Source: Botryllus schlosseri (lineage: Eukaryota). From it: DNA of 64,000 nt. The stretch is taken from positions 23,126,001 to 23,190,000 of the forward strand of contig CM119380.1 in the NCBI GenBank assembly GCA_051294905.1, in the 5' to 3' direction. Made by a program: the position numbers and the translations under genes. A model generated the notes under the pieces. It was not told where the DNA came from. It ran no database searches and saw only the letters and a program-made list of their open reading frames with translations. Each line of letters begins with the position of its first letter. Position 1 is the first letter of the stretch. Positions 2,743 to 4,891 of the stretch are shown piece by piece.

Positions 2743-4891
2743 ATGTTTACGAAGCGACATTGCAAATCTTTGGACGAACTAGACGACCGAGATTTGCCTG
2801 ACGACGTGCTATGCGATGACGACGACATTTTCGGAGAACCTGCGCGTACCGGAGAGAAGTACCCAGAGATTCCGAGACTGACAAGGCGCCGGCACGCCAG
2901 CTCCGTGGCGGAAGACCTATACGTCGATCTAGGCGCTGGCCCGATTGGTACCTTGCCTAGAAGGAAGTCTAGCGTGAAGCAGTTTTCTGTGTCTGCGATG
3001 TTAAGCAGGGCTTGGAGGTCAATGAACACTTTAGACAGGGACGATTCCGAAAATAATAGTTCGGCCCATAATGGCGCGGATGTGCCCATATTAGGCGGTT
3101 TGAGAAGGCGTAAAAGCAGGAAAGCCGATAAAGACGCGGGGAAAAACGGAGCGAAATACACGCCTGTTAAACGCAGGCCGATTCTATCGCCTGTCATGTC
3201 GACTCCTGTAATCGAGCATATCGCGCGCGCGCAGCCTCTGCTCGAACCCGAATCTCGGGAAGAGCAGGAGGAAGCCAGGGTGTCGGTTTCGGAAGACGCT
3301 TACACTTGCATGGACTTGAACTTTGAGGCTTTCTCGCGGTCGCGACAGCCCGTGCGAGCGGATGAATTCGTGTCGGCCAGGGTGCTTCCTTTGAAGAAGC
3401 GTAGCGGCGCTACCCCGCCTCCTTTGCCAGATCCTGCGCAGAAACCCAAGTATCTGCCTTTGAAAGATATGTCAGTTGCGAAGTCTAGGACATTGTCGAG
3501 AAGCAAGTCTCCTAGCTCCGCGTCTGCGTATCGCGGTATTCTGAAAAGCACGGATGGTGAGCTGGATCGCCCGCCGTCTATTTCCAGGAATGCATCAGCT
3601 GACAATATCTTACAGTCTGTCGCGTCCGATTCAGCCTTTTCCGACACTATTTCTTCCGATTTGAAAGCACAGCACTACGCTTCTGCGCGTACGTTAACTT
3701 ACCGCGAATCCGCAGGCCAGGATAAAGTCCCGCGACCTCCGTTAAGCAACTCATCTTCCATCGAGGAAGACGTGTCGTATTTTTGCTGCTCGCCTACGCG
3801 TTCCGGGAGCAGACACGCAAAATCCAGCGCGTTAGATAGGAAATCTTCCACGCTACCGCACGAGCCTATTGTAATCTCCCAACCGGGCGCGGCTTCCAAA
3901 TCTTCCAGGCTGAAAAAGAAACTGGGCGGTTACGCGTTCTGGAAACCGAAAGGCATGTCGTCCGGCGTTCAAACCGGTAGCAAACAGAGCGCTGCAGTCG
4001 ACGAAAAAGACCAGCAGGTCTCGAAAAATCAACGGGAGAATGAGTATCAGACTTTAGGCCCCGGCGATAAACCTAAGAGCAGAAGCAAGAGTTTCGATTC
4101 GAAGAAAGGAAAAAAGATCGACTCTATTCTTGCCGATTCGGGCAGCACAGTTTCTCGCACGCTGTCCATCGCAGGCCGCGGGAAACCTGCGTCGCCCTTG
4201 CCGCCTATACCTGTAACACACGGCGGTAGATCCACAGGTCCTAGATCGCCAGCTTCTCCAACTGGCTCCGATTTTTTGACCAAATCTCCACCGCCCGTGC
4301 CTTCCGGATATCGTACGTTGCGTTCTCCGCCTCCTTTGCCTTCGCACGATCTTGGCAGCAGGTCAAATACAATGACAGTGGGTCCGAAGCCTGCGCGTTC
4401 TAGTTCGTTTACAGTGCAGCGCTCGCCTTTGCGTGTCGTGTCGGATAACGTACCGCGACCTAACGTAGAATCATGGTATCGTAAAAAGTGTGAGGATTTC
4501 GATTATGACATACCCAACAGCCTGCCCGCCAATAAATATAGACTGGTGCAGCAAGGCTTCAAACAAATCCTCGTGCCTCGGGTCGGTTTGGGCGACAATA
4601 CGGCGATTTTAAGCCACGGCTCTACTGACTTGAGTCAGAAACCGCGTCCGTTCTTAGCGCGTAAATCTAAAAGCAAACTACTCAGTTCCGTCGATCCCGT
4701 CAGCCCCGGCGGTCGTAGCCAGCGATCTAGAAGCGGCGGCGAGACCGAGTTGCCCCGATTTGATTTCGATGCGCAAAGCCGATCGCTCGCGAGACACGAC
4801 TCTAACCGAAGGCGTTCTTCTTTTCCCGCCACTATAGAAACGGACGACTATGCCGAGATCACGGAAGAGGACCTGTACAACATGCCGTCAC
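2743..4891 (+). CDS. Large alternative or extended FAK exon (~716 codons) reading in frame through the Y397-exon acceptor
   Basis: The 720-aa ORF 2737-4899 (first ATG 2743) ends in exactly the Y397 exon sequence and uses its donor at 4892. Disordered, with YVDL, YTCM, YQTL, YDIP, PPPLP and PLPPIP. Confidence 0.75.
4838..4891 (+). CDS. PTK2: FAK autophosphorylation-site (Y397/Y407-equivalent) exon
   Basis: Pyrimidine tract plus TAG acceptor (cttcttttcccgccactatag|aa) and donor c|GTGAGT. Encodes (E)[17 protein letters not shown](R), matching vertebrate [19 protein letters not shown]. Confidence 0.93.

Follow-up and report, generated by a model that had tools for sequence, protein, structure and literature searches.

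The 64,000-nt stretch of Botryllus schlosseri DNA analyzed here (assembly GCA_051294905.1, contig CM119380.1, positions 23,126,001 to 23,190,000; hereafter the window) lies at the single FAK (PTK2-family) gene of this genome, and its main subject is a 2.1-kb open reading frame (ORF) that runs, within this gene, directly into the exon encoding the autophosphorylation site. Coordinates are window positions, with minus values denoting bases upstream of window position 1 on the same contig. Tyrosine numbering (Y397) is that of the vertebrate FAK autophosphorylation site, represented here by the motif DDYAEI. The locus is assigned to the FAK family because FERM, linker, kinase, and Focal_AT exons were found in order. 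FERM_C_FAK1 (PF21477) exons scoring above the cut-off lie on the same strand at contig positions 23120545-23120658 and 23121612-23121713 (window -5455 to -4287). They are followed, ∼3.5 kb upstream of the window, by a 109-nt proline-rich (PR1) linker exon (-3610 to -3502, plus strand; NKRELPPPPMGG...NLMSS) that ends ...GTCGTCCG/GTAAGC in phase 1 and is joined in RNA to the Y397 exon. The latter is a constitutive exon of 54 nt (4838-4891, plus strand) with RNA joints on both sides, and its end at 4891 is spliced to the first kinase exon (5973-6063, plus strand), which begins YDYEI. Further kinase exons were recognized by sequence at 8487-8735, 8754-8870, and 10663-10743 (plus strand); the best PDB matches of exon 8487-8735 are PYK2 (1.4e-14) and FAK (5e-13), and the motif KWMAPE is present in the kinase exons. 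Three Focal_AT (PF03623) exons above the cut-off lie at 40731-42003.

The sequence ahead of the 54-nt exon is open in one frame from 2656 to 4896 on the plus strand (747 codons), after a TGA at 2653-2655 and before a TGA at 4897-4899. The longest open frame in 500 shuffles of this stretch was 249 codons, and the chance of a 747-codon open frame, calculated from stop frequency, is ∼1e-14. A first-pass annotation of this DNA had described the apparent intron as an open frame reading into the Y397 site, and these values bear it out. The ORF as listed (ORF2, 2737-4899, plus strand) is 720 amino acids long when counted from TTG 2737. Its first ATG (2743-2745, plus strand; context gacATGt, with G at -3) lies two codons before the first conserved motif, TKRHCKSLD, and is the favored, putative start codon of a long isoform. 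The body of the extension (2746-4837, plus strand) is predicted to encode a disordered, S/P/R-rich polypeptide with conserved islands; the stretches KLKKKLGGYAFWKPK and WYRKKCEDFDYDIPN (within 2743-4837, plus strand) are parts of this predicted protein. GC content is 51-54% across the ORF versus 38-45% in the following intron, and the extension sequence is single-copy in the 495.5-Mb genome.

At its 3′ end, the frame traverses an inner pyrimidine tract and AG acceptor (4813-4837, plus strand; cgttcttcttttcccgccactatag/aa, with the AG at 4836-4837), where the same bases encode RRSSFPATI(E). It then encodes ETDDYAEI at 4837-4860 and reaches a consensus donor, 4891/GTGAGT (4892-4897, plus strand), the last base of which is shared with the in-frame TGA at 4897-4899. 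The tract, its AG, and the donor are present as the first-pass annotation described them. The splice sites at -3502, 1330 (the donor of ORF1, a large exon farther upstream), 2705 (a candidate), 4838, and 5973 are all phase 1, and the phase fit proposed earlier between the 1330 donor and 2705, which would begin in phase 1 (a/gc), is likewise correct. An upstream stop, an in-frame ATG, and a frame open to the donor and contiguous with the Y397 exon are found in the same layout in two other loci, L001 and L003.

The RNA data consist of contig sets from three runs (X1, X2, and X3) that behave as RNA and were aligned to the genome at a 95% threshold; a raw-read run (X23, 6% sampled) gave no coverage even of constitutive FAK exons and is hence uninformative. 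All three contig sets contain the joint from 4891 to 5973 (GT..AG; depth 76, 38, and 52, respectively). The left side of this joint is only 49-56 nt long, the length of the 54-nt exon at 4838-4891. In one X3 contig, position 4836 is preceded by a further 137 nt; the 30-nt end of this addition maps uniquely to -3533 to -3504 in the linker exon, which shows that the inner acceptor at 4837/4838 is in use. From the short side of the joint and the X3 contig, we conclude that the dominant mRNA runs from the linker exon to 4838-4891 and on to 5973. This mRNA skips both ORF1 and the 2.1-kb extension, and a short FERM-kinase linker of the vertebrate type results. The earlier claim that the same bases are both coding and a splice signal also holds, as the acceptor is in use and its tract supplies codons for RRSSFP that are kept in orthologues.

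An exhaustive HMMER search over 1.84 billion representative proteins retrieved four clusters, P0001 (742 amino acids), P0002 (502 amino acids, partial), P0003 (897 amino acids), and P0004 (970 amino acids), with identities over the matched stretches of 89, 63, 41, and 34%, respectively (89, 61, 38, and 30% in the alignment). The P0004 cluster has six near-identical members, and all four clusters are bare ORF calls on unannotated contigs. Every orthologous ORF finishes with the Y397 motif and (E/D)DLYNMP; a GT donor comes next, and the frame stays open for a few codons of the intron. The inner pyrimidine tract and AG occupy the same place and phase in L001, L003, and L009, which are all the loci with DNA there, and in L001 and L003, the kinase exon YDYEI... 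follows after 0.1-0.8 kb. Frame-breaking indels, which the first-pass annotation had proposed to look for in orthologous introns, were not found; the four other taxa keep the frame open for 500-970 codons. In the alignment, islands of identity (TKRHCKSLD; EDxYVDL...TLPRRKSSVK; IYTCMDxNF; RPPLSNSSS...FCCSPTR; KLKKKLGxYAFWKPK; SPLPPIP; WYRKKCxxFDYxIPN; RKSKSK; and NRRRSSFP) stand amid variable, indel-rich sequence whose indels are multiples of three, a pattern that would be expected for a disordered region with short motifs. A scan of metagenomes for more orthologues gave only the contig already known, and a protein search with the full ORF gave P0001-P0003 only.

Polymorphism within the species points the same way. 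Half of the listed ORF polymorphisms are synonymous (8 of 16, versus 24% expected; P = 0.02), and the proportion is the same when those in ORF1 are added (15 of 30; P = 0.002); the relatives other than P0001 are too diverged for an estimate of synonymous divergence (Ks). In L009, a 63%-identity relative from a marine-biofilm metagenome sample (PMC6355793), homology stops at residue ∼282 and gives way to AT-rich sequence with stops in all frames that ends ttttgtag/AAT. This interruption (L009 1-140) looks like an intron, in which case the homologous sequence there would be read from a spliced mRNA. One base off the point of the L009 interruption, the window has an acceptor-like sequence (3578-3590, tctatttccag/g) inside the uninterrupted ORF. 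Because the frame is open in diverged orthologues and synonymous changes are in excess, we conclude on these comparative grounds that the extension is coding sequence under purifying selection, and by the same sequence evidence, the 54-nt Y397 exon is extended at its 5′ side by 2.1 kb of conserved sequence that codes for protein. An origin as a transposon or captured gene was considered and rejected, given the single copy, the lack of a family match, and the fusion to the Y397 exon in every taxon.

The product of the extension has few predicted folded parts. The mean AlphaFold predicted local distance difference test (pLDDT) score is 39, and the model is confident only at residues ∼570-612 and at the Y397 motif. 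Pfam has no family for ORF1-4 or the orthologues, ESM Atlas returned only generic disordered fungal clusters with scores below 0.9, and Rfam gave no match in window 1-6200. The extension does contain many short motifs, with 10 PxxP, 12 Yxx[LIVMP], and 7 basophilic R-R/K-x-S/T matches. The conserved Yxx[LIVMP] sites are YVDL, YTCM, and YDIP (in EDxYVDL, IYTCMD, and FDYDIPN); the conserved SPLPPIP resembles the LPxIP of PR1; and a conserved basic-Cys motif, TKRHCKSLD, lies near the N terminus. TLPRRKSSVK and NRRRSSFP are candidate sites for basophilic kinases or 14-3-3-like binding, and RRRSSFP, which is encoded by the pyrimidine tract of the acceptor, fits the 14-3-3-like pattern RxxSxP ten residues before Y397. 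In FAK, the FERM domain clamps the kinase by binding its C-lobe and hides the Y397 linker, and its deletion activates the enzyme; pY397 and the PxxP site of PR1 act jointly to recruit Src to FAK. The predicted long isoform would be without the canonical PR1 exon as well as the FERM domain.

Coverage of the extension in RNA is low. The depth over the ORF body is 3-6 in all three RNA contig runs. An X1 contig (4450-4866, depth 3.7) crosses 4837 unspliced and stops roughly a k-mer beyond the branch point; this read-through merges with the main path at 4866 in the assembly graph, which blurs the link to the kinase exons. Contigs therefore do cross 4837/4838, where the first-pass annotation had asked for reads, and coverage is not confined to 4838-4891. 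At the other end, contigs entering the ORF span 2599-2945 (X1), 2611-2892 (X2), and 2670-2908 (X3), all of them continuous across 2704, and depth rises at the contig starts (2599-2670) in X1 and X3. These starts place a putative 5′ untranslated region and transcription-start zone of the long isoform at 2599-2742 (plus strand), an approximate zone because contig ends do not map RNA 5′ ends. A clear piece of intron (5359-5667) has depth 3.5, and later intron bins have 0-2. The share of sequence covered, as a rough estimate, is ∼90% for the ORF versus 52% for this control intron in X1, ∼65 versus 33% in X2, and ∼55 versus 0% in X3, a contrast that may be inflated, as introns of this highly polymorphic species may drop below the 95% threshold. 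For this reason, the fuller coverage of the ORF than of the intron is counted as weak evidence for the long form.

Taken together, the sequence data give about an even chance that the long form is an alternative first exon that starts at ATG 2743 and yields a FERM-less FAK with a 711-residue disordered, motif-rich N terminus. A minor or condition-specific transcript would start inside the intron at ∼2600-2670. Translation would run from ATG 2743 straight through the inner acceptor, then read as codons, and the same donor at 4891 would join the extension to the kinase exons, so that two products, main FAK and the extended form, would share the last 54 nt. As the FERM exons lie upstream, a product starting at 2743 would be without the FERM domain, and the 711-residue disordered N terminus would stand in place of this autoinhibitory domain. 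The result would be an open, scaffold-rich FAK, with recruitment and restraint exerted by phospho-dependent motif binding instead of by FERM. The transcription start, start codon, translation, and motif functions in this account are ones that we infer.

Several results weigh against this account. In the data analyzed, no transcription start, 5′ junction, or peptide for the long form was seen. The depth over the ORF is only 1.3-2 times that of the clear intron piece (depth 3.5) and ∼5-10% of that of the constitutive joint, and unspliced pre-mRNA or DNA carry-over could account for all of the ORF-body depth. The T4 run at 2828 is one nucleotide shorter in an X3 contig (depth 4.5); this deletion is either an allele or an error and, if real, would break the frame. 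No protein in the searched databases joins the ORF to the kinase (YDYEIPRDE), and queries with the N-terminal 140 and C-terminal 150 amino acids found no database protein bridging the ORF to neighboring exons; the lack of an annotated isoform means little, because the databases may not include records of this genome. A phase-1 AG exists at 2704, and the ORF1 donor is compatible with it in phase.

Some of these points would also suit the view that the extension has no present-day product, with its coverage being pre-mRNA or DNA, its frame a relic or kept for some other reason, and only the 54-nt exon of consequence. Depth near intron background, the lack of a junction or start specific to the long form, the possible frameshift allele at 2828, and the lack of any annotated protein containing the extension sequence all fit this view. 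We nevertheless consider it very unlikely, given that five taxa, at identities as low as ∼34%, have kept a frame of 500-970 codons open, with islands of motifs and indels in multiples of three, whereas noncoding constraint does not preserve a reading frame. The excess of synonymous polymorphism and the intron-like interruption in L009, which implies splicing of homologous sequence, also speak against it.

The extension could also be used as an internal exon, in which a distal 3′ splice site at 2704/2705 would add 711 residues to the linker of full-length FAK, with the joint made from -3502 or 1330. The candidate acceptor (aatattcag/gc, 2690-2704, plus strand, phase 1) has a weak pyrimidine tract (6/17). 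Its phase matches those of -3502, 1330, and 4838; each of the three species has phase-1 AGs ahead of the conserved part; and the 6-nt polymorphic deletion found exactly at the proposed acceptor (2705-2710; X1, depth 4.8) would keep the frame. In addition, the strong conserved phase-1 donor of ORF1 must join something downstream. That donor belongs to a sister large exon of the same gene (ORF1, -26 to 1330, plus strand, extending over the left window edge; donor 1330/GTAAGTAA, candidate acceptor at -14), whose ATG at -26 lies six codons after a stop and which contains repeated YAxI/V motifs like the Y397 site. An ORF1 orthologue in L001 (3971-4939) has an identical phase-1 donor, A/GTAAGTAA, keeps the motif EDPYATI, and has three ATGs; in both species an ATG lies 2-4 codons before EDPYATI. 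ORF1 was not found in L003.

The evidence against internal-exon use comes from the RNA and from the comparison of lineages. No joint from 1330 to 2705 and no loose end at 2705 are among those listed for the three RNA contig runs, where depth is low, and the contigs of all three runs are unspliced through 2704. The phase-1 AGs upstream in the three species all have poor tracts (5-9/17) and no alignable conserved position; strong acceptor-like sites have 12 or more pyrimidines of 17, and both acceptors seen in use are clearly pyrimidine-rich. An in-frame ATG is kept in position in each of the three independent lineages, after the upstream stop and ahead of the first conserved motif (window 2743, also in P0001; L001 10001; L003 10133 and 10163), for which the joint chance is ∼0.08. 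Frame-shifting changes separate P0001 from the window just upstream of ∼2720, and a 1-nt indel polymorphism separates L003 from L006/L007 upstream of the ATG; constraint therefore starts near the ATG. The L001 orthologue of ORF1 has no phase-1 AG between its upstream stop and EDPYATI and therefore is not an in-frame cassette exon there; ORF1 looks like another alternative first exon instead of a symmetric cassette exon. A third large ORF of the gene, ORF3, is built to the same design, with its ATG (32854) immediately behind a stop.

On balance, the comparative data lean to a first exon over an internal exon. The 1330/2705 junction that had been suggested is absent from the listed joints, the contigs run on through 2704, and the candidate acceptors are weak; we regard internal-exon use as unlikely, although such a form may coexist with the first-exon form. 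The first-pass proposal of a FERM-less FAK from ATG 2743 is thus favored on comparative grounds.

The frame closes two codons past the donor here and 1-14 codons past it in relatives, and there is low-depth intron coverage downstream of 4891. Both would be consistent with an unspliced transcript that is translated from ATG 2743 to the TGA at 4897 into a kinase-less, 718-amino acid docking protein ending in the Y397 motif, which would also explain why the frame runs into the Y397 exon. By analogy with FRNK, such a protein might act as a decoy for Src-family SH2/SH3 domains. We judge both this product and its decoy role most improbable. The donor at 4891 is strong, conserved, and efficiently used; chance alone would be expected to place a stop soon after a donor, and the position of this stop varies among relatives; and neither a poly(A) signal nor a 3′ end was seen past 4891.

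Two further large disordered ORFs lie on the FAK strand between the kinase and FAT exons, neither with a Pfam family. ORF3 (32854-34671, plus strand) has 605 open codons, an ATG directly after a TGA, and a GGG/TAAAC-type donor, and the other (36732-37409, plus strand) has 225 open codons. From its place ahead of the FAT exons, ORF3 may by analogy be the FRNK counterpart of this gene. A broader and more tentative proposal, which we rate somewhat below an even chance, is that, in this invertebrate clade, several internal promoters are nested in the FAK locus, each driving a giant disordered, motif-laden first coding exon joined by splicing to the common body (ORF1, -26 to 1330; ORF2, 2743 to 4891; and ORF3, 32854 to 34670), so that two FERM-less kinases and a long-headed FRNK-like protein would be made beside canonical FAK. 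In this proposal, ORF2 would provide a 711-residue scaffold with Src SH3/SH2 docking sites, a 14-3-3-like site next to Y397, and possibly a basic-Cys membrane anchor, which would take over from regulation by FERM, and 25 bases would be a splice acceptor for one mRNA yet coding sequence for the other.

The minus strand of the same region holds a nested leucine-rich repeat (LRR) gene at 1283-2593 (LRR_8, E = 1e-17), an exon of which extends over the 3′ end of ORF1, including its donor. An 869-nt X3 contig over 1371-2285 skips 1482-1538 with CT..AC ends, that is, a 57-nt minus-strand GT..AG intron. Contigs of this antisense gene end at 2285-2593 and adjoin the sense contig starts at 2599-2670; these ends would be consistent with transcription in both directions from a single promoter region in the intron. 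The ratio of observed to expected CpG is 0.8-1.9 and mostly >1 in exons and introns alike (window 1-12000), with no CpG depletion, and because it is above 1 across the whole region, it is no promoter mark here. The nesting is shared by L001, which carries an immunoglobulin (Ig) exon on the minus strand ahead of its ORF1 orthologue, and was not detected in L003. Antisense ORFs at 2595-3197 and 3300-3647 lie opposite the GC-rich coding frame and are most likely by-products of it.

Elsewhere in the window, a high-copy interspersed repeat with terminal inverted repeats, like those of miniature inverted-repeat transposable elements, occupies 5005-5220 in the intron after the Y397 exon and has no Rfam match. 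A first look at the genome gave 2,530 candidates, with many 136-200-nt copies at 90-96% identity, and the repeat is the cause of depths of 1e3-3e4 and of "opposite strands" joints in all four runs. An intact 582-amino acid pogo/Tigger-type DDE_1 transposase is encoded on the minus strand at 52680-54428; it has an HTH_psq-like N terminus and a Cys/His-rich C-terminal tail, and its Atlas score is 0.98 to DDE_1 clusters, mostly of arthropods and molluscs. A 483-codon open frame on the plus strand (62551-64000) runs off the right end of the window.

If the proposed isoform is real, a conserved form of FAK that swaps the FERM domain for a disordered docking region would imply a different control of this kinase. 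The locus is also a clean case of double constraint, in that a constitutive acceptor has its pyrimidine tract and AG conserved also as codons, for RRSSFP...E, and it illustrates how a conserved coding exon of 2 kb can escape annotation pipelines if the dominant mRNA skips it.

The layout itself has a precedent. The human and macaque FAK transcript BC028733 starts 135 nt inside intron 14 and is contiguous with the Y397 exon, exon 15; it uses an intronic in-frame ATG in a noncanonical context, adds 20 new residues, and predicts a protein without residues 1-392, which include the FERM domain (PMC1570463). It was confirmed by reverse transcription-PCR in brain, and reverse transcription-PCR from upstream exons gave nothing, pointing to an internal promoter (PMC1570463). 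The first-pass statement that vertebrate FAK varies here only by micro-exons was therefore incomplete (PMC1570463). As in BC028733, the extension described here is borne by the intron and contiguous with the Y397 exon, and the predicted product lacks FERM while keeping Y397 and the kinase. The two differ in scale, with 135 nt and 20 residues, reported from human and macaque only, versus 2.1 kb and 711 residues, with docking motifs, in five taxa here, where the transcript is only predicted. Thus, the architecture was already known from BC028733, and what is new is its size and conservation (711 versus 20 primate-specific residues); if our reading is correct, a transcript of the BC028733 type looks more like a recurring solution and less like noise.

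The micro-exons of vertebrate FAK are cassette exons of 28, 6, and 7 residues that were not found outside vertebrates; box 28 (exon 13) and box 6 (exon 14) precede Y397, and box 7 (exon 16) follows it (PMC1570463). Like these boxes, the extension is alternative in-frame coding sequence between the PR1 linker and Y397 exons that would alter the surroundings of the autophosphorylation site; unlike them, it lengthens the Y397 exon itself, without a break, at the 5′ side and is about 100 times longer. FRNK arises from a promoter inside the FAK gene (PMC1570463), and a promoter within an intron of the FAK gene that gives an N-terminally truncated product is likewise proposed here. FRNK, however, is without the kinase, whereas the proposed product keeps Y397, the kinase, and the C terminus and loses FERM only. 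By analogy with engineered FERM-deleted FAK, the predicted isoform would be expected to adopt an open state in which Y397 can be phosphorylated constitutively; unlike the engineered protein, it would occur naturally and carry a long substitute N terminus that possibly supplies its own targeting and regulation.

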